Assembly: GCF_963676685.1 (NCBI RefSeq)
Contig: NC_092348.1
Span: forward strand, 95,728,001 to 95,792,000
Source of the DNA: Mytilus edulis
Taxonomy: Eukaryota
Reading direction: 5' to 3'
DNA length: 64,000 nucleotides
The notes under the pieces are model-generated. The model was given only the letters and a program-made list of their open reading frames with translations. It was not told where the DNA came from and ran no database searches. Below, piece after piece: positions 25,401-51,753 of the stretch (position 1 is the stretch's first letter; the number at the start of each line of letters is the position of its first letter). Made by a program: the position numbers and the translations under genes.

Positions 25401-28400
25401 TATCAAACCCTGAGAATCCTTTTGTGATGCGGCTCCTCATGGAAAAACATCTCTTTTTAAACACAATAGGTTCTTTGAAAATTTAATACTTTGAACACAT
25501 TTAAAAGCTCCATAGTTTTAACACATTTATTCTATGTTCCCCTACTTTCTAAATCAACACAAATAGTTAAGCTCAATCACTTGTTTATCATAGAAACGTG
25601 TCAAATATCACTACACAGAGATTTTTTGTTTACACACAACTTTTGAGTTCCTCATTTTGAGGTGCATTAGGGATATTGACCTAGCTATTTTCTCTCCGAC
25701 AATAATACCAGTATCATTGCCTTTCGAACGTTTATAACTACCATAGTGATTGTCGTTTGTTGCTGTATTACATATTTGTTTTTCGTTTATTTTTGTATAC
25801 ATTAATTAGGCCGTTAATTTTCTGGTTTAAATTGTTTTGCATTTGTGATTTCTGGGCCTTTTATAGCTGACTATGAGATATGGGCTTTGCTCATTGTTGA
25901 ATGCAAAACAGTGACATATAGCTGTTCATTTCTGTGTCATTTGGTCTCTTCTGGACAGTTGTCTCATCCACTATCATACCACATCTTCTTTTTATATATA
26001 CAGCTGATTTTTTCACTTCAATCTTACCTGTGTCATATCACTCAGATTGTTCCATGCATCCCATTTAGCTTTACCAACAAAATCCATCATGCCTGGTTTT
26101 TTAACATTACACTTTCCTATTGTTGCCTTATAGAAAAAGAAAAAAAGAAATAATTTTAATTGATGTACATGTATTACTATAAAAGGATGTGTAATAGATT
26201 AAAACACTTGACATTAAAAAACTGCTAAAATAGATAAATATATTTATTTATGGAAGTACACAGCCCTCTACTTGAGTTATATAAATTCTGACAAAGTTAG
26301 TTGACAAACGTGTTTCTTTTCTGTATACCATTACCAAGTTTTAAATGAAGTTTACAAGTTCAGTTTAACAAGCTTTACAGTAGACACAACAAACTTATAC
26401 AGTGGGTTTTTTATTTCATTTTTCTTGTACTGGGTTGTGATAAGATATGACATATGACAACAACTGTTGGATGAGATGAGGTTCCTGACTTGGTAGTCAG
26501 TGTTTCCATATTGACTTGATTTATAACAGATATGTACTTCAGCTATAAATTTCTCCATTGATAATGTTTCATTTGCATGTGTGTATCATCTTGTCCACCC
26601 AAAAACCACTTATCATCATGAATGTTAATTGGAACAAATATGCTAAGCAATTGAGAACATGAATTCAAATTTAGTTAACCCTTTTTTACTAGGTTGACTG
26701 TTTCTTACATTTGGATTGAGACAAAGTTGAACTTACATGGGTTAGGCTAACTTACATGGGTTAGGCTAACTTACATGATGGGTTAGGCAAACTTACATGG
26801 GTGAGGCTAACTTACATGGGTGAGGCTAACTTACATGGGTTAGGCTAACTTACATGGTTTAGGCTAACTTACATGGGTGAGGCCAACTTACATGGGTGAG
26901 GCCAACATACATGGGTGAGGCTAACTTACATGGGTGAGGCTAACTTACATGGGTGAGGCTAACTTACATGGATTAGGCTAACTTACATGGGTTAGGCCAA
27001 CTTACATGGGTGAGGCTAACTTACATGGGTGAGGCTAACTTATATGGGTGAGGCTAACTTACATGGGTTAGGCTAACTTACATGGGTTAGGCTAACTAAC
27101 ATGAGTTAGGCTAACTTACATGGGTTAGGCTAGAACTTACATGGGTTAGGCTAAAACTTACATGGGTTAGGCTAACTTACATAGGTGAGGCTAACTTACA
27201 TGGATGAGGCTAACTTACATGGGTTAGGCTAACTTACATGGGTTAGGCTAACTTACATGGGTTAGGCTAACTTACATGGGTTAAGCTAACTTACAAGGGT
27301 GAGGCTTACTTACATGGGTGAGGTTAACTTACATGGGTTAGGCTATTCTTTTTAGGTCCTTTTTAGTCATACCGATAAATTTTAAAGCAAACATTTATTA
27401 GAACATGTCAATATCACTGCATGTCGACCAACAGGCTCTGATGCTATGATCATTAGCTTAGTATTCAGTGCTTCACATATGATTTATAACTTACCTTATC
27501 TAAAACAGTTGAATAATTAACAAAATTTTAAGAAACAGAGGTTCAAACTTCCTCATGCAAAGTTAACCTTACCTGGATTTGCTTAATCTTTTTAGGTCCT
27601 TTTCCGTCATATAACTCATCGAGTAAAGTAATTGTACATCCTTGGCTTTAACAAATTTTTGGTTTACGCATTATTAATGTCAGAATGAATATAATAACAA
27701 GAATGTGTTCATAGTACATGGAAGCTCCACTCATACTATCATTTCCTATGTGGATCGTGAAATTGAGGTCAAAACACTAATTTGGCATTTAAATTAGAAA
27801 GATCATATCATAGGGAACATGTGTACCGGTACTAAGTTTCAAGTTGATAGGACTTCAACTTTATCAAAAACTACTTTGACCAAAAACTTTAACTTAAAGC
27901 AGGGCAGATAGACAAAACCAACGGACCAACAAACAAACAGACGCATAGACTGAAAAATAAATAATGCCCCTAAGTGATGCATAAAAAGTACTTTGGACGC
28001 AAAAAATTTATGAAGCGTTATTTTCATTTTTAAGAGGACACCAATGTCCCATTAAGACAAATTGAAGAAAGATTTATGCTGCCTGGATGTAGATCTGCCT
28101 ATGAATTAATTATTTTACCTCTCTCCCTTGTTCACTTACCTGTTTAAATAAAGCATAAATTGTTAGTTTGACATCATTGCCAGGTTCATTCTGGAGAGTG
28201 TTCAATTGAACTTTTGCTTTCTCAAACTCTGCATCCATAGCCCCTAGGACTGGCCTTGATCTATGAAATCCTCTTGTTGGCATAAAATGTACACTACAAG
28301 AAAATGGTTTAATTTAAGAATCAATATTTTATCTGTTGTTTTCTATAACATCTACCATTAAAATGTAAATTTCAAAATATATATAATCGACAAAAAGTCA

Positions 28401-31400: not shown

Positions 31401-32416
31401 TACTGACAAGAGGTTATCTCAGTACATAGAACCTCCAGTTATGGTAAAAGATCCTTTAGATTTGAGGCAGCACAAGTATGGAACTCACTTCCTAATGAGG
31501 CTCGACTCATGACTTCTTTTGACCAGTTTAGGAATTATATAAATTCCTGGTGTGGGGGTCAAAAATGTTACTGCAGTTCATGTCGTTTCCACCCAGTGCT
31601 GTCTCAAAGCTGAAATTTCTTTCTTTCTTTTTATAATGGCCTTTTGCTCTGCTTTTTATGCATTTTTATGCATTTTTTTTTTTTTTAATATATCTGCCAT
31701 TAAATGCTAGTGCTTATATTTATTTATTTATTGTTTTCATGCTTTTAGTCTGTTATATTTTATGATCCCAAGTGATTTGCTGATTCCCCCGTTTCAATGC
31801 ACATAGAGGCGCTTGCCACATGAACTTTGACTCTGGAGACTCACAAATCAAATAGAGTTGCTTTCATTATATTGCATGTTTTTTTAGTTTTATTTGGTAG
31901 TATTTGCATGATGCTGCATGTTTTTTATGTGATAGTCGGTTAAAGAGCTCACCAGAGCTCATGTTTTCTCTGTTATTGTGTATATATATGCCGACTCTAA
32001 ATAAAATTTACTTACTTACTTACTTACTTACTTACATGTACCTCACTATACTTCAAGTACTTGTCACTGTCAGTATTAACTTTATACCAATCAGGTTCAA
32101 AATATAAATCAATAATCAGTTTGCAAGTCAAAAATTTATATTTCCTTTGTCGTTATATGAAGATAAATCGGTGTTATAACATAAGGTCTTAACCTTCCTT
32201 TATACCTGGTGAGAAAGTGGACTTTGATCAGAAACTGAGAAAGAGTAAACTTTTTCAATAGTAACATGTAGTTGAAAAGGGTTATGAAACTTAAGATTAT
32301 AATTCTTATAAAAATAATTGTGATGTACTCATAAAAGTCTTATCATTTCCTCATTAAACTAACTTCTTGAAGGTGAAAATATGATTTTGAAAAGTCCTCC
32401 TTATGGAGGCAGCCAT
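16496..32416 (-). CDS. ECI2: Enoyl-CoA delta isomerase 2 (ACBP + crotonase domains), 10 exons, 393 aa
   Basis: GT-AG exons, all phase-consistent: 32364-32416, 28140-28293, 26028-26126, 24826-25011, 24081-24153, 23407-23509, 22885-23005, 21828-21917, 20753-20896, 16496-16654 (1182 nt). ACBP motifs [12 protein letters not shown] and GKAKWDAW. Crotonase motifs [41 protein letters not shown]-terminal SKL. AATAAA about 25 nt after the stop. Confidence 0.95.
17085..18162 (+). mobile_element. Helentron/HINE-like element with about 6 internal tandem units of about 160 bp
   Basis: Repeated aaggggcataactc...aaacttgatctg..ttttgtggtaataagcattgtgtataagtttc. 3' hairpin gcccctctgctatggtgggggc plus A tract. 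Related copies at 19855-20447 and, reversed, about 33280-33568. Confidence 0.65.
18661..19443 (+). mobile_element. Non-autonomous Helentron-type element
   Basis: Starts actagaggctc...gtcgctcacc and ends with a perfect hairpin agctcacttggcccaagggccaagtgagct followed by A tract. Confidence 0.7.
19919..20163. repeat. 35-bp minisatellite, 7 identical copies, inside a Helentron-like unit
   Basis: Unit ggtaataagcattctgtgtagattttataccattt. Confidence 0.95.
26730..27344. repeat. 19-bp minisatellite, about 32 copies, in ECI2 intron 2
   Basis: Unit aacttacatgggt(t/g)aggct. Confidence 0.95.
28447..30412. mobile_element. Non-autonomous DNA transposon, PIF/Harbinger-like
   Basis: Imperfect TIRs of about 40 bp (ggcttaaattaaaatattgtttgtttgcagtttac / aaaactgcaaacaaacatatttttaaggttggcc) with a 3-bp TGA duplication at 28444-28446 and 30413-30415. 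Confidence 0.7.
31428..32036 (+). mobile_element. 5'-truncated LINE (CR1/L2-group-like): ORF2 C-terminus, 3' UTR and (TTAC)n tail
   Basis: 31428-31613 translates [26 protein letters not shown]...CYCSSCR...*, a typical LINE ORF2 end. AATAAA followed by (ttac)n at about 32000-32036. Confidence 0.75.
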
Positions 32417-32453
32417 TTTCAAACAACCGCGCCACCTATCGACCATAATCCCA
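32417..32453. promoter_or_regulatory. 37-bp spacer between the divergent ECI2 and CDYL start codons; core of a putative bidirectional promoter
   Basis: CAT at 32414-32416 and ATG at 32454-32456 each splice in frame to a downstream exon. Start contexts are GAAAATGGCTGCC (minus) and CCAATGGCGG (plus), resembling YY1/TISU-type motifs. Confidence 0.75.
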
Positions 32454-35400
32454 ATGGCGGAAAACGAAGTTTACGAGGTAAAAAAAAACCTGAGATCTTT
32501 ATAAACAACCAATTTTGGAACGCATATGACAAGTTAAGGAGATAGATATGTTTTCTACATGATCAATTTAAAGCAAGACTAGTAAATCTGCATAAAGATT
32601 TTTTTTCTTTTTATGTTTCAGCTGTCAGTTTTGAAAAAGGTTCATCCAATTACCTAAAATAAACCGGTAGCTACACCAGTCTTATGTAACATTATTTACT
32701 TAGAGATAAAGTTTTGTATGAATATTAGAAGAAAAAATAAGGCTTTAAAAAATTTTGTTTTTAGAACTTCTAATTATCCTGTAACTTCTTCATATTTTAG
32801 TCTAATAATTATCTTTTATGAACAAGTTGCTAATTATTTTTTATATCAAATAAATTTGTAAGTTAACAGAATATCCCTTATTCTGTTATTTGATAGTTGT
32901 GTCATTATATGAATTTTGTCATGAAATGACCTTAGATCCGTCTCTGAAGAATTGTCATTTAAAATGTATCGATACCTTATTAAAAAAAAGAAATGGTATG
33001 AATGGTATGGAAAATTTTGCGGGAATATTTTTATTTTATTAGTGAATAATTTTTATCAATAAAATTTTGAAATTTATGTTCTATTTAACCTTTGAAATTT
33101 CTTTATAAAAGTACATCATTTATGTACATGTAAATCAATAAAAGAGCTTCAACGCATAAACTCACATGTTTTCATTTATTCTTCAAATGTATTGTTATAA
33201 TTTTTAACCTTCTATGAAATAACTGAATTTTTTCCTGATAAATATCATGTATTTGATGGTTCTGCGATCCCAAATATTTTTATGCTCCTGGCTGCTGTAG
33301 CAGAGGGGGTGCATTCAGTTTTACCCTTGTCCCTCCGTTGGTTTCTGTACTCTAACTTCTAACTCTTGTACATTAGCCACAACCAACTGTTATGAAATTT
33401 GATTGCTGATTAATATTTCAAAAAAAAGATCAAGTTGTTTTTTTAGGGGGTGTCACTTTTATTGTTCTAGAGTGGTTCTAAAGTTCCTCTTTACACATAG
33501 AAAATTTGTTGATTTTTTTTCGTTTATGATATCTGACGTTAGTTTGCCTCAACCAAATGCTATGAAACCGGTACCTCGAATGACCGAATAACACTGTTAA
33601 TATGCGAATAACACTTTTGTGACGGAATAACACTTGAAATATTAATATTAGCACATATTTGTGACTTTTAAACATTGATTATTAAATAATAATATATTAT
33701 CGATGTATTTTATAACTAAAAATTGATTTACAGAAAGCAGATAAGTTCATCAAGATCTTTTTAAATTTAGTATGTGCATCCAACATGGTGACCACGGAAA
33801 TCAAAATGGCCGCCATGTTGGAAACCTTCAATTTCTGGGTTATGTATGTTAAAATGTTCTATGTTCCGATATATGCGTGAGATGTCTGTCATTGGACATT
33901 ATCCAAATATCATCATCCTATGCATGTATTGTTACAAGACGGGGGTGTTATAAAAGTAACGGTATTTTTACAAAGTTAACACACTGGTTACTATATTCTG
34001 GGTAAATTCTACTATAGAGCTGTCAACTCTGGTGTCGAGTTACAAACTAAGTTATACTGGTAGCGTAGCTGGCAAAATGGTCAAAGCACTGGTCTAAATA
34101 AGGTAGCTCAGCCTCAGAAACTTATTAACATTGACTTACTTACTTCATGTACAACAGATAACAACATCAAATTAAGCTTTACAATTTATTATATACAAAA
34201 CATTCAATACTATAACAAGCATAAACCACATAAAAACCCACCAGAGCACTTAATAAAATATACAGAGACCCCCCTTTTTGGTAAGTTATTCGTTTGTCAA
34301 CAACGTAGTAAAAACGTATTTGGTTTGCTCTGGTAATTTCTTTGGTATCAGGAGTGACTGCCCTGGTAGCGGCCTGCAGGCCATCTGAAGACTGTTGTGC
34401 ACTCGCTTTTATACATCTGTCCCACCAACGTCTCGTGCCCCTATGGAGAAATTACGTTATGCTAATTGGATGCTGATCTCAGGTCATTAGGTCAATGACG
34501 TCAATAAAAAATAGTGATGCAAATGGCGCCGATCGAAACGTTGACACTCTGTCGAGTCAGGAAATGGACAAACGGAACTTATCTAAGCTTACTCTAAGCA
34601 TGTATGGGCCCCGGTTACAATATTCATGACTGCCTTACACTAATAAGATAACAAGGTACAAATGTAATAAAGGGGTAAAGTGTGAAATAAGGGAAACCAG
34701 AAGGTGGGAACAGTTGTTCAGTCAGGGGACCCCCATGGTCGAACAGTGAAGACGAACTCTATATTATTATTCCCAGAGACCTTACTAACAATATTTACAT
34801 CCAATTACAATATATAAGTCTTCACAATGTTCATCAAATGTCTGTATACGAGTTGGCTAACAGTAAACGAAGAACGTGAAAATACTCTTTTGTTCCGACG
34901 TTGGAAAGTTCCAGGCGGAAAGAACTAGCTAGCCGAAAAGTTCCGGAGGAACTTATTAACTAGTTACTTTGTTCAAAGTGACAAGTTGAAAAGTTCCAAC
35001 GTAACATATCAACTAGTTAGAAAGTTCCTATTTCCCAAATTAGTCAAAACCGGAACTAACAAACTAGCCCAAAAGTTCCAACGGAACTTATCAACCCGTC
35101 ACAAAGTTCCATTTGGAGAATTGATGCAAAGTAAAAGCACAACATATTATATTAGAACCTTTCAAAGGGGAACCAAGATACTGATTACAAAAGTCAAAAG
35201 GAACTAGTCACAAAGTTCCTCTTTGACAAATTAGTCAAAACCGGAACTAACAAACTAGCCCAAAAGTTCCTCCTCATTTGGATACTTTTAAAAATATCAA
35301 TTTCAGATTAATGTATAACAATAAATTAGAACTTTTTCCGTTATTAAGGCAACATTCTGACCGAATAAACTAGTTTTTCTGTTCCACCAGAACTATTCAA

Positions 35401-38400
35401 CTAGCTACATTGTTCCGGGACTTTTCAACTAGCTACTTTTTTCAGGAACTTTTTGACTGCACTCGGAATAAAACAACTAGTTGGAAAGTTCCATCGTAAC
35501 AAAATAACTAGTTGAAAAGTTCCGCCAGAACAAAGTAACTGACGGAACATAGCGGCTGTTACATGTTTACTGAGTATATATGTATAGCCCGAAAGAGTCG
35601 TATGTACAAACCTACAGCTTACTCCCTACACTGTAACAGTATCATACTTTACTTACACAAAACTATGATTTTTCCAAGAAAATTGACAATAATAATTGCA
35701 GTAACTTGACTATATCATGTTTATTATATATTCAATTTTCTAATTTTAGCTCTGGTATTAATTAAATTGTTTTAAATCGGAAAATACATTTAGGGCTAAA
35801 TATAAATTATTGATTTTTTAGGTGGAAAACATATTGGAACAGAGAGAGGTTGATGGACAACTGCAGTTTTTTGTCAAGTGGAAGAATTTCAATGAAGACT
35901 GGAATACCTGGGAACCAGTAGACAATTTGTTGGATTGTTTTAACTTAATCCTTGAATTTCAGGAAAAGCAACATGATACTGTTACTACCAAAACAAATGT
36001 TGAAAAGTCAAAACTGGCTAGAAAAGAGGCATTAAAGATTGTGAAGAAAGCCAAGAGATTGAACTCTGGTAGTGATAATATTAAGAAAGCTTTACTGAAG
36101 CATGCAGCTATTGTTAAAAATGAGGATGTTAGCCTTAACCTATCAGTGGACACAAGCGTGCTTACTTCTACCCCATTTAAGAAGTCACCTAAATCACCTA
36201 AGTCACCTAAATCACCTAAGTCACCAAAATCACCAACACAATCACCAAAATGTTCACCTAAACCCAGAAAGTTGGAAGAAGGGGTATCAACACCTATTAC
36301 TACAACTAAAAGGACTCCAAAGAAACCTTCCAAACTTGAAGAGTATTTTGATCCATCAAAAATGTTTATTAAAAGTTCTAGTAAAATATTGTCAAATGGT
36401 GTTCAGAGTTCAAAGGTTAACTCTCCAAGTGTTTTAAGAACTTTACTTACCACTAGCCTCCCTGTTCCTACGAAACAAAGTAAAATTAACAGTCCTTGTA
36501 TGCATGCTAGTGTAAAACTGAAGAAATGCACAGTGAGTTCAGTGACATTAAACAGTAGCAAAACCACAGATGCATTGCAAAGTGACAAAGAAAGTGACCA
36601 AATAACTCAGAATAAATCTGATAACTCTCAGAGTAGTACAAAAATAAAAAGAAAATACACAAAAAGATCAGATCAGGAATTACTGGGAGGAAATAAAAAG
36701 AAAACCTCTAAAGTTGGAAACAAAACTAAAAGTACAAGTTTGAAGAATAATCTTAAGAAATCGCTAGGAGGTAAAACTTTAAAAACATCAGATAAAAACT
36801 TTAAAATGAAGAAAACAGGGAATTTGTTGGTAGTTAAAATGAGACCAGCTATCAAAAAGGAAAAGAAAAGTGAATTAAGTGCTTCAAGTCAGAGCGAGTG
36901 TTCTGAAGCTGAAACAAAAGATATAACTTTACAAGATATGAATAACAGTGCTGCACAGGAAAAAGTCCACACAGAGATTCAGGCTTCTCAAGGAGAGAAG
37001 AAAATTGTGAAGAAAAAAATTATATCATTGAAAGTAAAGAAAGAAAAGTTAAACAAAGAAGGCAAAAAGAAAGAGAAAAAAATCAAAACAAAAGATCAGG
37101 CAGATGGGAAAAAAATAAAGAAACAAAATATGAATGAAGGGAAAAAAGTGAAAGTGAAAAAGAAAAACAAAGAAGATGGGAAGAAAGAAATAAAAGTAAA
37201 AGGAGTAAAGAGGAAGTTGGAAGATTGTATTGAAATCATAGACACTGAGTCTGATGATGATGTTCAAGTCAAATTTTCTTTATCTCCAAAATCTAAGAAA
37301 GCTAAAACTGACAATTCACCAAAAAGACCAGAAAATGAGAAAAAGATGGAGAGTCCTAGCAAGATAATAAAAGAAATGGGTAAAAAGACTCTGCAGGTGA
37401 AAGTTCGTCCAATGGAAACGACATCATCCAATATAAAGAAGATGAGATTAATTGATGCAGTAAAACCTCACCCTGGAGTCTCAAAATCAGGTACATGTAC
37501 AGTAAAACCTCACTCTGGTGTCTCAAAAATCAGGTACAGTAAAACCTCGCCATAGTCTCAAAATTAGGCACAATTATAAAAACTCCCTGAAGTCTCAAAA
37601 TCAGGTACAGTAAAACCTCACCCTAGAGTCTCATAATCAGGCACAGTGAAAACTCTCCCTGGAGTCTCAAAATCAGGTACAGTAAAACCTCACCCTGGAG
37701 TCTTAAAATTAGGTTCAGCAAAACCTCACTCTGGAGTCTCAAAATCAGGTACAGTAAAACCTCACCCTGAGGTCTTAAAATCAGGTACAGTAAAACCTCA
37801 CCCTGGAGTCTCAAAATCAGGCACAGTAAAACCTCATCCTGGAGTCTCAAAATCAGGTATACAACCTTTTTGTATCAAGTTGATACATACAGCTGACATA
37901 TAGATTCTGTTAAAATAAGTAAAAGATGTTTCGACAATGTTTTTCCTTATAATTAGATGTACATATCTTAGAGTCATGATAGAACTTATTAGGAGAGTCA
38001 TTTGAATGGCTTTAATATCCATGATCCTGATGATGAAACATTTCAAATTTTTATCATATTGATAACACAACTAAGGCTCATACATTTAGAGCATTCTAAA
38101 GGAATATAAAAAAAAATACAAAAAGATTTATGCTGCTTTCTTATATCTGATGCTGAATTGCACCAAGCTGTTGGAAATATTGTCATGATATTTACATCAT
38201 AGTCTAGCATTTTGTTTTTCTGTACTTTCTAAATAATTTTGTTATGCTTGCAGATATTAGCTGATCTTTAGGATTTTTGTTTTCTTTTTCTTAATATATT
38301 TTAAACTTTATTATTTTATATTTACAGCAATTGTTCGACCAGTATCACCAACTCCTGTGTTCACATCAGTCAAGCCTATAATGTCTACTACACATGCTCG

Positions 38401-41400
38401 ACCCATGGTTGCCATGGATGCACTTTGTGCAGATGTACCTGCAGGGTATCACTATGTACCCGCTATGATTCCTATCAGTCCTTCATCAATGTCATACAAA
38501 ATGTTACTTGATAGTCTCCCTTTCCAGTTTCACACGAAGAAGTCCAGCAAGAAACGAGAAGAAGAAATGGTGCGTGAAGATGATGTGGAACGGAGAATGA
38601 GTGTTAGACAAAGTGAATGTGCCTACCGATATAAAGAGATTGTTGTGAAGAAGTGTAACCGATATACACAGATCTGGTTAAATACACATTCAAAGTTAAA
38701 AAATTGTCTTAATCCTCAGGTAAATATATTTCTTTAAATTGGTATAAGAGGAGTTTGGTGGTAGATGAAGATATTTTTTATTCTTAATAGCTCTCATCAT
38801 TTCTTTCCACATACTAAATCTTTTTCTTACGGAATAGAATTTGTTAATTTTTCCCGCATTTCTGAATAAATGTCAATGTATTACATCATAATGTTGTATT
38901 AGTTATGTATTGTTGCTTTTATTTAATACCATCAATAATACATAATTTTTCATCTGTATTATATTGATGTAGACTTTGAAATTGACCGCATATGTTGCCA
39001 GCAATCTAATACGCATATGTTATATAAAAATAAGGAGATGGGATATGGTTTCCAATGAGATAACTACCCACCAAAGTTCAAATGAAGGTGATGTGAGCAG
39101 TTGTAGGCAGTCATACAGCCTTTATGTATGAATGTCTTGTTCTATGTTTTAGGTAATACAAGAAGTAGTGTCAGCTTTGAACTCAGCGAAGTATGACGAT
39201 AGTAATCTAGTCATGTTCAGTGGTCTAGGGAATGTGTTCTGCAGTGGTATCGATCTCACTTACTTGATCTCAAATTCAATGGATAGGAAAATGGCAGCAA
39301 GAAAAATGGTGGATGCTCTCAGGTAAACATAATCATAGCCACATATGAATAAAAAGGATGTGCCTCACCCTGTATTATTTGTCTCTGTTTATTGTCCTTT
39401 CACTTTACTAATTTACTTGAACGTTTAATCAAACTAAATATAAACTCATCTCTACAAACTGAGCAATTGGTAAAATATTTCATTTCATTGATTAAGTGAA
39501 AGGTAATCATTATGAAGTAGATGCAGTGAAATAAAAGGTATTCTTAATCTTAGCACATAATTTCGAAGTTTGTCTGAAGATTGTGCAGAGTTATGGTCCT
39601 TGGACTTAACTGAAGTCACTTAAATAATCAGTTTTTAACTATTCTTTCGTCATGCTTGAAGATATTGACTTGATATTTGATATATAGTTGACACCATGAC
39701 AAGTTGTAGATCAAGTTAAAATTTTGTTCCAAAACAGTGAATTTTTAACCAGTAGGGACTATGTATTGCCATGCAATACTCACAGTATGCTTGTTACTAA
39801 AATGTATTAGTTATTTGCCTAAAATTTTCTTTTAGGGATTTTATGAAAGCTCTCATCACATTTCCCAAACCTTTGATAGCTGTAGTGACGGGATCTGCTA
39901 TAGGTCTTGGGATGACCATGCTCCCGCTATGTGACATAGTCTACGCCAGCGATAAAGCTTCATTCCATTTACCATACTCGCAGCTGTCACAAACACCAGA
40001 AGGATGTGCGTCATTTCTCTTACCTACCACAGTTGGAATGGCCATGGTTAGTATTGTTTACAGTTACATACAAGAAGATACTTTATAAAAACTGAATGTT
40101 GTTACAGAAAAAATTTAACTAATAATTGGTGTTTATCAGTATTCACTGATGTTCCAATAAAATATGTACCATACTGAGAGGAGGCACTTTTAAATTGTTG
40201 CAATAATCGCTCAATCACAATTTCAAAATTTTTATTTTCTTCTGTTTGTGTTTTTTTATGAACTGCATCTTTAGAAAATATGCATGATTGATGTGTATCA
40301 AAAGTGTTTAAATTTGACGTTCTTGATATCTTGAATGTAATGCTAAAATATTCCCATTATTATAGGCTAATGAATTACTGATTGGAGGACGGAAGATCAC
40401 AGCTATTGAGGCGTGTCAACTTGGTCTGGTATCACAGGTGTTCTGGCCTACCAGTATCATGCAAGAAGTCATACCTAGAATAGAAAACATGGCCCTACAG
40501 TCAGGCAAGGTAAACAAAATATGTGCTTCTTTAGGGAGGGTCAACTGTGTAGGTGAAAACACTGTTTTTACACATGATAAGCTGAATAACAACTCATATA
40601 TAAATTTTAAAAAAATACTATGGAAAATTGCTCAAGTATGCCACCAATTTGAACTATTTTGGAATATTATAGGAAAATCAAATATAAAGTTTTTGAATTG
40701 AAAAAATACTGAAAAATGGAAATTTTTATTTTCCAGTTGCATACATTTATCTAAGCTTTTAGAATATAATAAAACCCAATTTAAGTTAAAAGAAATAGTA
40801 TTGTTTTGCTGTACATAACTACCACTTTTCTAAAAAAAAAAAAAAAGTATTTATTTTTATTGAAAAATCTTAATTTTTCATTTGTCACAATAAACAACCA
40901 TGGTTTTGAGAGTTATTTCCCCTTCCAAACATACTTCTTTAGATCAGAAAAATAATTCCTGTCTCATTTCATTGTATCAGTGTAGAAAAAGAAGAAGATT
41001 GAACATGTTATGCAATATTGACAAATCTGATGTATAAGAAAGAAATAAATGTTTGTCTTTTCAAAACAAATCAACGAGTTAAAAATCATCAATTACATTT
41101 TAAAAACACTAACCATAGAAAAAGCCACTTCAGAGCATCATTCTGGTGGCAGACTCTGTACTAAGGAGAAATCTCAATCTTTAGTACTTGATGTAATTGA
41201 TGATTTTTAAATCGTTGATTTATAGCAGATCATTGATATGGACTTATAATACAATCTTTCTTTTCAGGCTTTAGAGACAACCAAACTATTGATTCGAAGT
41301 CACCAGAGAACAAAAATAGAACTAACCAATGAATCGGAGTGTAATCTGTTATTGGAGAGATGGCCATCAACAGAATGTCAGAAGGCAATAGAGAATTATC

Positions 41401-41429
41401 TTAACAATGATAACAACTTCTGTATATGA
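32454..41429 (+). CDS. CDYL: Chromodomain Y-like protein (chromodomain, long Lys/Ser-rich linker, crotonase-like domain), 7 exons, 923 aa
   Basis: Exons 32454-32477 (MAENEVYE), 35822-37490, 38328-38719, 39153-39322, 39836-40046, 40366-40509, 41268-41429 (2772 nt), all phase-consistent. Chromodomain YEVENI...FFVKWKNF...NTWEP. CDY-family segment VRQSECAYRYKEIVVKK. Crotonase motifs FCSGIDL, FPKPLIAVV, QTPEGC. Confidence 0.9.
33570..35562. mobile_element. Transposon fragment in CDYL intron 1 with subterminal aactagt..aaaagttcc arrays, ending TGTTACA
   Basis: Higher GC than the flanks. Many direct and inverted aaagttcc/ggaacttt motifs in 34895-35550. Only one terminus is recognisable. Confidence 0.4.
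37459..37860 (+). repeat. 36-bp tandem repeat (about 11 copies) across the CDYL exon 2 / intron 2 junction
   Basis: Unit gtaaaacctcaccctggagtctcaaaatcaggtaca (VKPHPGVSKSGT). Confidence 0.92.
41068..41221. mobile_element. MITE-like inverted repeat in the last CDYL intron
   Basis: aaatcaacgagttaaaaatcatcaattacat ... atgtaattgatgatttttaaatcgttgattt. Confidence 0.65.
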
Positions 41430-48333: not shown

Positions 48334-51300
48334 ATGGGAAACTGTGCAAAAGCATGTGGGAAACGTACGTATACATTATACATATACGAATGCTAACGGT
48401 TTTAAGTTGATATTTTGGTTCGAGAGTCATTTTTCTAATAATAATCACCTTGAGTCAAAGCTTTAATGATAATTGAACATATGAGGAACTCTTTTTATAA
48501 AATATATGTTGGTTTTAAAGAATTCACACTGTTTTAATCTTTCATTTACTAATTGAACGATGTAAGATAAAAAGGACTTTTTTTCATTTAATTAATATTC
48601 TAGACGGGATATGCCTAAAGAAACGTCCGAAAATAAAACGTACAATGCCAAGGATTGGGACACTGAGGCCAGTTGTACAACCATCGAATGACCGACGGGT
48701 CGGTTGGAGAGAAAATCTAGTTGATGAAGATGACCGATTAGAATCAAAACTTCGACAAGGAACCCAACAGGTAATAAATTAATGTAATAGTGCGATAATA
48801 TTTCCAAAATCCGTATAGCAAAACATAAATATAAGCAAGATTCTCATTCGCCATGCATTAGCAGGCATTGCATGTATAAACCTAAAATTTTCACATTATA
48901 TCTTCAGTAATGTCTCGTTTGCATTTTCATTTGAACTCTAATTTTAGTTAAATACAGACGAAGAACTCCCACCAAGGGATATTGTGGACAACCGAAGAAA
49001 GAAGAAGAAAAAACGAAGAAAGAAAGGTAAATTGGTACTCAGAACTCAATGAACAATAAAAATTAATATTATTATTAAGTTGTTTATGGTAAATATCCGA
49101 TTTAATTTAAACAGTTAACTGTTTAAAGAACCATATGAAGACAATAATGAATTAAGACCAATAGATAAATACTTGTATATTGAATAAAATCAAATAAACC
49201 AAATCCAGGCATATGCTTTTTTGAGTCTGCATTATTGAGATAATTTCACTCCTTGCTCTGAATTTCGTAGTTACAGTAGGTTTTATATCGTTTTTCTCAC
49301 ATCTTCTTTTGAATAATAATCCAATTACTTTATTTACAGACCAAGTTTCAGATGAAAATCGACCATTAGAAATAGAGTCATCACAGGTATGTATATGCAC
49401 TCCCTTTTTATTATGGTATTTCAGTATAGTTGATGCAATGTCCTGCGGGAAACTAAATATTAAGATTTCTGTATGATGTATACTTGAAAATTGTGTCTTA
49501 TATGATATTTCGACTTAAAGTTTTATGTATTAGTGATGATTTTTGTTGAATTATAATATCTGCTAAAGATAATGCTGAACGAAAAATTTTGATAAAACTT
49601 TGCAGATTTTGAATTTGTGTAAAATTGTGAATTGAAGAACACTCTCAACCCAAATGTAAATATTCCTCGCGCCTTAGCCTCGGTTAATATTAATAAACTC
49701 TCGGGCCAAAATCCTTGTTTCAACTGACCAAAATCAATATTGAATTTAAATACTTAAAACAAATAGGTGAAAACTAAAACTACAACCATTTTCCCAACAA
49801 AGTTTTAATTCAGCAACCGTTTTCGGTTAAAAAATCTACACATTTGATGTCCGCCATGCACATATGGTATATAAATAAAATTCGTTTATATTATTAGGAT
49901 TATAATGATTGTGACAATAGACAGAACCAGAAACCAAGAATCGGTAAGTGATGATATTGGAAAATAACTGCCACTCTATCAAACTAGGCCTAGAGAGGAA
50001 TTTAAGGACATAAGGTTGTCCTCTATTGAACACACTGAATCGTACCGTATATATATGTGTGCTTTACTAAATAGTCTAAGATTGCATTGCATTTTATTCT
50101 GAAATGCTTTTATATCAAGGTTTAACTACATATAAAAAAAACTGTCAACGAATGTTAAGATAAGATGAATCCTGTCAGAGTGAGACGAACACATTACAAA
50201 AATTCTAGACAACTTAGTATATATACACTTGACCATCGGATTAGCCCGCTTTTGTCTAGCATTCTTTTACATTCGTCGCAGACAATAACTACCACACTGA
50301 GAGGACCTTCAATGATGTGCAAATATGGCTCAGTGAAATATATGTTGAAAATGATAGGTCGTGAAAGGTTTTAATCACGGTTCCGCATGTTTGAAAAGTA
50401 CCGTTATTTCAACATTGTTTTTGTATAAAAAAATGTTAGAAAAAAAATCAGTTGATTTTCTTGAATGTATTATATCTCCTTTAATCGGCTACAGATTACA
50501 GTTATCTTAAGGATGCAAACGATTCTACAACAAAAAAGCAGATCAAATAATTATTATCAGGGATATTGTTTAATTTTGTATGTTATATTCATTTAATCGA
50601 CTTATGGTCAAAACTTTTAATATATTTTAGATATTTTAGGGAAAAGACATTCAGTTTCACCTCATTACAATAAAGATAAAACCGTGACAAACTTGTTATT
50701 TCAACCAGTGGGATCAGACGTAAGTAATTTTCTCATTGGTTCCCAAAACGTTTAATAGCACAACATACTTAATGAAGAGAGAACTTGAAAGTTAAGGACT
50801 CCGAGGTTAAAGTGTGATCTACCCTTGAAAGTTAATGACTCCGAGGTTAAAGTCTGATCTACCAGATTAAAAATGGTTTAATAGCATGTATACTGTACAT
50901 CTTTAGGCATACATGTGTATAGTAGAATTTTCTAGGAAATATGTTTGAAGCATTTTATACTTCTAGATTGATGATCAGAATGTCCATCATCGGAAAAGGA
51001 AGAGAAAAAAGAAACACCAACAGAAGGAGAAAGCTGGTAATTTCAATTGTAAAATTTCTTAGTTTTTTTTGGTGCTATAATATCTAATTTTTCAATCTAA
51101 ATGGTTCAAAACATTATACCTAATTATTGCTTCTAATTTCTGTCATTTAGGCTAATATGGATATACAAATGTGCAGACACGAGCAGTTAAACGTATGGTG
51201 TAACATCCAACGCCTTCGAGCCTGCATGTTATGAGAGTACCACACTATCTTGTCGTTGAAACCCCATACAGCATCTCTTTGAGGGTGGTCTATCCCAAGG

Positions 51301-51753
51301 TTAACTTTAATTATGTCCATATTAAACATTTTTTTTTCAAGTCGCAGTCCGAATGTCTCACCCGGCTTCCCATTCGACCCACATTAAAGCTCCTATTAAA
51401 TTAATTTATTGTTTACTTCTTCTCGTCTCGAATATGCATGAAATGTTTTACATTGGACATTATGCAAACAATGAACACCTTCAAGTTTGTGGAAGTATAG
51501 ATCTCTACACTAACGACATGTCAGTTTGCGTCTGTATTCGACTTTTCGTCGACAATTTTTTTATAAGTTCAGTCTGAATATATTCAGATTATTTTTGTAC
51601 AGAATTATCTAAACCTAACATAATTCAATTCTTATACATTAAAAGCATTTCTTCTATTTAGGAGAAGAAAATCATGTAATGGTAACTATGAAGCCGACTG
51701 GTCAGTTCCTGACAGACGATACCGTTATTGGAGACCCAGACCATGAAAACTAA
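48334..51753 (+). CDS. Uncharacterised 206-aa basic, probably disordered protein encoded by 8 small exons
   Basis: Exons 48334-48364, 48604-48770, 48948-49026, 49340-49386, 49898-49943, 50631-50719, 50967-51036, 51662-51753 (621 nt). All are GT-AG, and exit phases 1,0,1,0,1,0,1 give one open frame MGNCAKACGKHGICLKKRPK...RRVGWRENLVD...RRKKKKKRRKK...RKRKRKKK...DPDHEN*. AATAAA near 51836 and 51849. An acceptor lies just before the ATG and a candidate UTR-exon donor AAG|GTAAGT is at 47428/47429. Confidence 0.75.

Follow-up and report, generated by a model that had tools for sequence, protein, structure and literature searches.

How can two genes whose coding starts lie 37 nucleotides (nt) apart on opposite strands both be transcribed, and where would their leaders lie? 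This question is raised by a locus of the mussel Mytilus edulis, at which the gene for ECI2 (enoyl-CoA delta isomerase 2) and the gene for CDYL, a chromodomain protein with a C-terminal crotonase-like domain, stand head to head. The window, that is, the whole stretch of DNA analyzed here, comprises 64,000 nt of contig NC_092348.1 (positions 95,728,001 to 95,792,000 of the forward strand). All coordinates below refer to it, and the region around the two coding starts is single copy in the genome and without Ns. We find that the locus holds a genuine pair of ancient paralogs, divergent and very compact, with gene models that are already annotated, and we consider it probable that this inverted-duplicate pair uses one compact promoter region and that its two mRNAs overlap in antisense at the 5' ends.

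Coding starts of ECI2 and CDYL

Direct reading of the plus-strand letters of the core region (ATGGAGGCAGCCATTTTCAAACAACCGCGCCACCTATCGACCATAATCCCAATGGCGGAAAACGAAGTTTACGAGGTAAAA) places the minus-strand ATG of ECI2 at 32416 and the plus-strand ATG of CDYL at 32454, with the 37 nt of 32417 to 32453 between them. From the former, ECI2 exon 1a runs for 53 nt to 32364 (or, from a second ATG, 32446 to 32364) and ends at the donor AA^GTTAGT at 32363 in phase 2 (^ marks a splice junction throughout), while CDYL exon 1 (32454 to 32477, plus strand) has 24 nt, encodes MAENEVYE and ends in phase 0 at the donor GAG^GTAAAA at 32478. Both exons are in phase with their second exons, exactly as the first-pass annotation had read them. 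Judged on the coding starts, the two genes thus lie on opposite strands with less than 1 kb between their 5' ends, as is expected of a divergent pair.

The second minus-strand ATG, at 32446 to 32444, is in frame with ATG 32416 and is preceded by an in-frame stop at 32473 to 32471; it is separated from the CDYL ATG by only 7 nt (32447 to 32453). The spacer encodes MVDRWRGCLK when read on the minus strand from 32446 to 32417, and it also contains three CpGs and a CCAAT-like CCAATGG that overlaps the CDYL ATG. AUG 32446 has a strong context, with A at -3 and G at +4, and because the minus strand has no further ATG from there up to 32525, an ECI2 start site anywhere in 32447 to 32524 would make AUG 32446 the first one encountered. 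On the plus strand, an in-frame ATG upstream of the CDYL start (32403 to 32405) would add 17 residues, with a stop four codons upstream of it, and an out-of-frame AUG is found at 32381, a CDYL start site in 32404 to 32453 being the simplest route by which 32454 becomes the first AUG.

Coding starts 7 to 37 nt apart are too close to accommodate a core promoter and a leader for each gene separately. The first-pass annotation had concluded that the untranslated regions must be either tiny or overlapping in antisense; we agree, and overlap gains in likelihood from the RefSeq start at 32446. We infer that a single compact promoter region would serve both genes, with the start site of each within or beside the first exon of its partner, and that the two mRNAs would overlap in antisense at their 5' ends by tens of bases. 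Such an overlap could couple ECI2 and CDYL or cause mutual interference.

Overlapping leaders versus very short leaders

In three RefSeq annotations, those of M. edulis, M. galloprovincialis and M. trossulus, the 403-residue isoform X1 of ECI2 opens with MVDRWR(G/V/I)CLK-MAASI..; this start corresponds to ATG 32446, a position that leaves only 7 nt before CDYL. This argues against a different arrangement in which the leaders are ultrashort and do not overlap, both start sites lying inside the 37-nt spacer and translation beginning at 32416 and 32454 by initiation of the TISU/YY1 type (TISU, translation initiator of short 5' untranslated regions). The 12-nt TISU consensus, SAASATGGCGGC, includes the start ATG and was defined in mammals; the element is characterized by a position up to +30, with the ATG some 5 to 30 nt from the cap, by a median leader of 12 nt and by YY1 binding (PMC2518114). 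Such an arrangement is further favored by the conserved nature of the start at 32416, its MAAS N-terminus recurring far outside Mytilus (MAASIRKTF in abalone, MAASL.. in oysters, MASIRC.. in crabs) as well as in the 393-residue models CAG2232764.1 of M. edulis and CAC5412351.1 of M. coruscus.

With respect to the initiator itself, the resemblance pointed out in the first-pass annotation is weak, with 10 of 12 positions matching at 32416 (GAAAATGGCTGC), 8 of 12 at 32454 and 7 of 12 at 32446, although the CDYL ATG carries the YY1 core ATGGCGG (four occurrences in the window versus 0.97 expected). The mussel pair is like TISU genes in its ATGG(C) start contexts, its YY1 core and the little room left for leaders, but unlike them in that its matches to this mammal-defined element are partial. 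The CDYL context lacks AA at -3/-2, AAAATGGC is equally an ordinary strong start context, and two outward core promoters within less than 37 nt would be unusual. Although matches to the consensus are in excess across the window (9 versus 2.9 expected), this excess is inflated by a dispersed repeat, which also holds the sole perfect 12/12 match of the window (33809 to 33820, minus strand). We therefore regard leaders confined to the spacer as possible but weaker than overlapping ones, and on the whole quite improbable. The repeat in question (33700 to 33823, in CDYL intron 1) resembles a miniature inverted-repeat transposable element, contains ATGGCCGCCAT and matches at least 74 places on the two strands of the genome.

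Several other signals around the starts were looked at. CpG dinucleotides reach 6 to 7 per 100 nt at the locus (top 1.3% of windows), and a CpG island was considered as support for a shared promoter and set aside as weak. On either side of the shared region is a TATA-like box (32306 to 32315 and 32495 to 32504), the two being inverted relative to each other, at the level expected by chance for AT-rich DNA; the one on the minus strand would set the ECI2 start site near 32470, within CDYL exon 1. An imperfect 38-nt palindrome (TTTGAAAA..CCTCC ATAA GGAGG..TTTTCAAA, 32386 to 32423) spans both the plus-strand ATG 32403 and the minus-strand ATG 32416. As an RNA hairpin it was rejected, its folding z scores of -2.4 (plus) and -1.25 (minus) not being significant in longer context.

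Gene identity and exon structure

Domain and homology searches, for which single exons or returned proteins served as queries, bear out the identities of the two genes and their head-to-head orientation, both in Pfam domains and in protein matches. On the minus strand, single exons match ACBP (4e-14 and 3.8e-06) and ECH_1, an N-terminal ACBP domain and a crotonase-fold isomerase domain being encoded on separate exons as in ECI2. The ECI2 exons, including the exon 1a-exon 2 junction, are identical to XP_071176159.1 of M. edulis (P0207), annotated as "enoyl-CoA delta isomerase 2-like isoform X1." Exon 2 (28140 to 28293, acceptor tag at 28296 to 28294) encodes the remainder of the presequence and the start of ACBP and holds the Met of MPTRGF... 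Exons 3 to 6 (26126-26028, 25011-24826, 24153-24081 and 23509-23407) and 7 to 10 (23005-22885, 21917-21828, 20896-20753 and 16654-16496, stop 16498-16496) encode the end of ACBP, the crotonase domain and the C-terminal ..GSKL. Like mammalian ECI2, the predicted protein has a basic presequence and an SKL end, the latter a type 1 peroxisomal targeting signal, and thus appears to carry dual targeting signals.

On the plus strand, single exons match Chromo (2.7e-12, profile positions 4 to 53 of 53) and ECH_1 (4.3e-15). CDYL exon 2 (35822 to 37490, acceptor ag at 35820 to 35821) opens with VENILEQREV.. (VENILEQREVDGQLQFFVKWKNF), encodes the chromodomain and a long Lys/Ser-rich linker, and is 85% identical to a protein annotated as "CDY [Mytilus coruscus]" (P0001). 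The crotonase-like domain is encoded in exons 3 to 5 (38328-38719, 39153-39322 and 39836-40046) and 6 to 7 (40366-40509 and 41268-41429, stop 41427-41429). As expected of the CDY family, this C-terminal domain is closest to ECI2 and CDYL: in a comparison of a CDYL crotonase exon with PDB entries, human ECI2 scored 77 bits, CDYL 68, CDY 66 and other crotonases at most 56. Furthermore, a 2,990-nt Logan contig encodes an 894-residue protein with chromodomain and crotonase domain that is colinear with the plus-strand gene (P0011). Since 2,990 nt leaves no room for introns, the contig probably represents an assembled transcript of a related mussel. The exon 1-exon 2 junction of CDYL recurs in this protein (MAESEIYEVEEIL) and in M. 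coruscus CDY, as MAE(N/S)E(V/I)YE^VE. With P0011 as query, the protein collection yielded no RefSeq CDYL from the M. edulis group.

Since several species, annotated independently, and the probable transcript contig all show the same junctions, and since the region is single copy and free of Ns, an assembly or exon-prediction artefact, for which we found no supporting point, is extremely unlikely.

Three features of the CDYL sequences may be added. A 9/18-nt repeat in the linker (36182 to 36234) encodes SPKSPKSPK.. and differs in copy number from M. coruscus. A minisatellite of 11 units of 36 nt (37458 to 37859) begins within the 3' end of exon 2, and its units each repeat the donor context AAATCAG^GTACAG and encode SGTVKPHPGVSK in frame; from the sequence, alternative donors that add 12-residue units are conceivable. 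The M. coruscus CDY model P0001 joins CDYL to exons matching 50633 to 51750, which belong to a gene further downstream, and skips two crotonase exons, and it is probably a mis-merged model.

Alternative N-termini of ECI2

ECI2 models differ at their N-termini. In addition to the starts at 32446 and 32416, isoform X2 of M. edulis (XP_071176160.1, P0237) has an N-terminus that maps to an alternative exon 1b (32206 to 32267, minus strand; 20 residues plus AG, donor CAG^GTATAA, phase 2 into exon 2), and the exon 2 Met (MPTRGF..) is the start of the 372-residue X2 in M. galloprovincialis, M. californianus and M. trossulus. The resulting forms of 403, 393, 396 and 372 residues differ only in their presequences, with 47, 37, 40 and 16 residues before ACBP, respectively, of which 6 to 9 are Lys/Arg and 0 to 1 acidic. 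By analogy with the dual targeting of mammalian ECI2, these variants would plausibly alter how the enzyme is divided between mitochondria and peroxisomes, the choice of first exon setting presequence length. The ECI2 orthologs were reached via P0091, a representative search with ECI2 exon 2 having given mostly exon-sized fragments. In M. trossulus, two ECI2 loci are found on one chromosome (XP_063438977-80 and XP_063438989-90, with eight accession numbers between them), which suggests either a local duplication of an ECI2 unit, perhaps together with CDYL, or a haplotype duplicate.

The first-pass annotation had held that a different first coding exon in either gene would undermine its reading, and for ECI2 this is in part what we observe, since both exon 1b and the exon 2 Met are annotated as alternatives. 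Such N-termini, annotated in four Mytilus species, fit the view that at least one of the genes is mainly transcribed from elsewhere and that the closeness of the ATGs is a neutral relic without regulatory meaning. A possible acceptor upstream of the CDYL ATG (tcctcctt..cag^CC, 32412/32413) points the same way, as does the mammalian pair, whose separation by hundreds of kilobases indicates that tight linkage is not required. Conversely, the exon 1a-bearing X1 is listed first in three species, the P0011 product begins at the same Met as CDYL 32454, no acceptor is visible on the minus strand upstream of ECI2 exon 1a, and conservation in M. coruscus extends to the spacer and both start regions. 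On balance, we consider a neutral relic unlikely.

Paralogy and adjacency of ECI2 and CDYL

The crotonase domains of ECI2 and CDYL have four intron positions in common, each with the same phase. The first of these falls at ..NAINYK^MYEEV in ECI2 and ..NCLNPQ^VIQEV in CDYL (phase 0), the second in the codon before KFVNAF and DFMKAL, respectively (E in the one, R in the other; phase 2), the third at ..GTAK^ASEML and ..GMAM^ANELL (phase 0), and the fourth at ..LPKI^SLQK and ..QSGK^ALET (phase 0). One homologous crotonase exon measures 144 nt in both genes, the central crotonase exon shows 55% identity between them, and ECI2 has two additional introns. PECI and CDYL are listed among the paralogs whose duplication predates animal divergence (PMC3091328).

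The two genes are also neighbors in other species. In M. coruscus, the CDY and ECI2 models have consecutive accession numbers (CAC5412350.1 and CAC5412351.1) on one 1.62-Mb contig, and MRHLSTINP, an N-terminal extension of the CDY model, equals the translated M. edulis spacer. Human 6p25 has the order PRPF4B, ECI2, CDYL, RPP40 (PMC7479479), and on pig chromosome 7 ECI2 lies at 2.42 to 2.45 Mb and CDYL at 2.85 to 2.97 Mb (PMC11639466). The same orthologous pair is thus consecutive in human and pig as in the mussel; the pig genes, however, are about 400 kb apart and CDYL has several promoters, whereas the first coding exons abut in the mussel. The two genes are divergent in human as well, where a gene symbol ECI2-DT (divergent transcript) exists. 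A metagenome scan with P0010 gave no match, and a degenerate DNA pattern of exon 1 yielded 77 metagenome loci, none of which encodes CDYL or ECI2 by tblastn, indicating chance matches. In the literature, we found no paper that describes an ECI2-CDYL arrangement or microsynteny.

Because the genes are paralogs with four common intron positions and phases, and because they are still neighbors in human and pig, the most economical explanation of these sequence data would be that the pair arose by an inverted tandem duplication and has been preserved, its members still linked. One copy would have retained the ACBP module, and the other would have acquired a chromodomain. Among animals, other paralogs stand head to head as well, such as COL4A1-COL4A2 and the divergent histone genes H2A-H2B. 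The mussel genes resemble these bidirectional pairs in lying on opposite strands, with outward first exons much less than 1 kb apart, and in being ancient paralogs that have stayed adjacent across phyla, but they differ in that the ATG-to-ATG distance of 7 to 37 nt forces overlapping or very short leaders.

CDYL exon 1 and the methyl-lysine reader

What hangs on the start of CDYL transcripts is the completeness of the chromodomain. In an alignment with CBX5, EVYE of exon 1 occupies the first strand and includes the cage tyrosine, and all three aromatic-cage positions are filled, by Tyr7 from exon 1 and by the Trp and Phe of KWKNF, while the Chromo profile match begins at position 4, in exon 2. 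Since exon 1 carries the first aromatic-cage tyrosine, this 24-nt exon is, as judged from the alignment, required for a complete reader domain, and only CDYL transcripts that open with it would encode a complete methyl-lysine reader. The mussel chromodomain is nearer to HP1 (55 bits) than to CDYL (about 30 bits).

A comparable dependence is reported for human CDYL: one variant that loses the upstream residues has a cage without its first aromatic residue and fails to bind H3K9me3 (PMC2787366). In the human CDYL1a/b/c set, as in the mussel, an upstream exon supplies the first cage residue, and the choice of first exon decides methyl-lysine reading (PMC2787366); the human gene also has an intron at the same place as the intron after mussel CDYL exon 1. 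Unlike the human gene, mussel CDYL yielded no alternative first exon in our analysis, the upstream in-frame ATG at 32403 standing alone.

Weighing of the shared-promoter reading

Several observations count against overlapping transcripts from one compact promoter region. The MVDRWRGCLK extension of 10 residues is genus specific, being absent outside Mytilus, and the start at 32446 may be an extension of the open reading frame by the annotation pipeline and not proof that the mRNA reaches this far. Alternative ECI2 first exons exist, and exon 1a is not necessarily the main one in every tissue. On the CDYL side, AUG 32381 or 32403 would come first if the start site lay upstream of 32402, which limits how far the CDYL transcript can overlap ECI2. 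The CpG enrichment is modest, the locus being one among about 20 such clusters in 64 kb. Despite these points, we hold that an inverted-duplicate pair with a compact common promoter region and antisense-overlapping 5' ends probably accounts for the locus.

A more far-reaching version of this reading, in which the head-to-head pair is the ancestral bilaterian state left by the inverted duplication from which CDYL arose, still promoter-fused in mussels and still adjacent in mammals, with the overlap coupling or mutually excluding the ECI2 targeting isoform and the CDYL form with a complete chromodomain, is put forward only tentatively and has the odds against it.

Implications

CDYL ties short-chain acyl-CoA chemistry to chromatin. 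The co-regulation of acyl-CoA metabolism and chromatin through ECI2 and CDYL, as proposed in the first-pass annotation, is a hypothesis. The locus offers a compact natural test case for the way in which a pair of core promoters and a pair of translation starts can share one DNA stretch of less than 100 bp. As a divergent paralog pair, the locus is a tidy but not exceptional case. The CDYL crotonase domain and the ECI2 isomerase domain have a common ancestor, and the abutting paralogs picture the origin of CDYL by inverted duplication followed by exchange of the N-terminal module. If this adjacency holds across invertebrates, the persistent linkage of the two genes in mammals would be accounted for.

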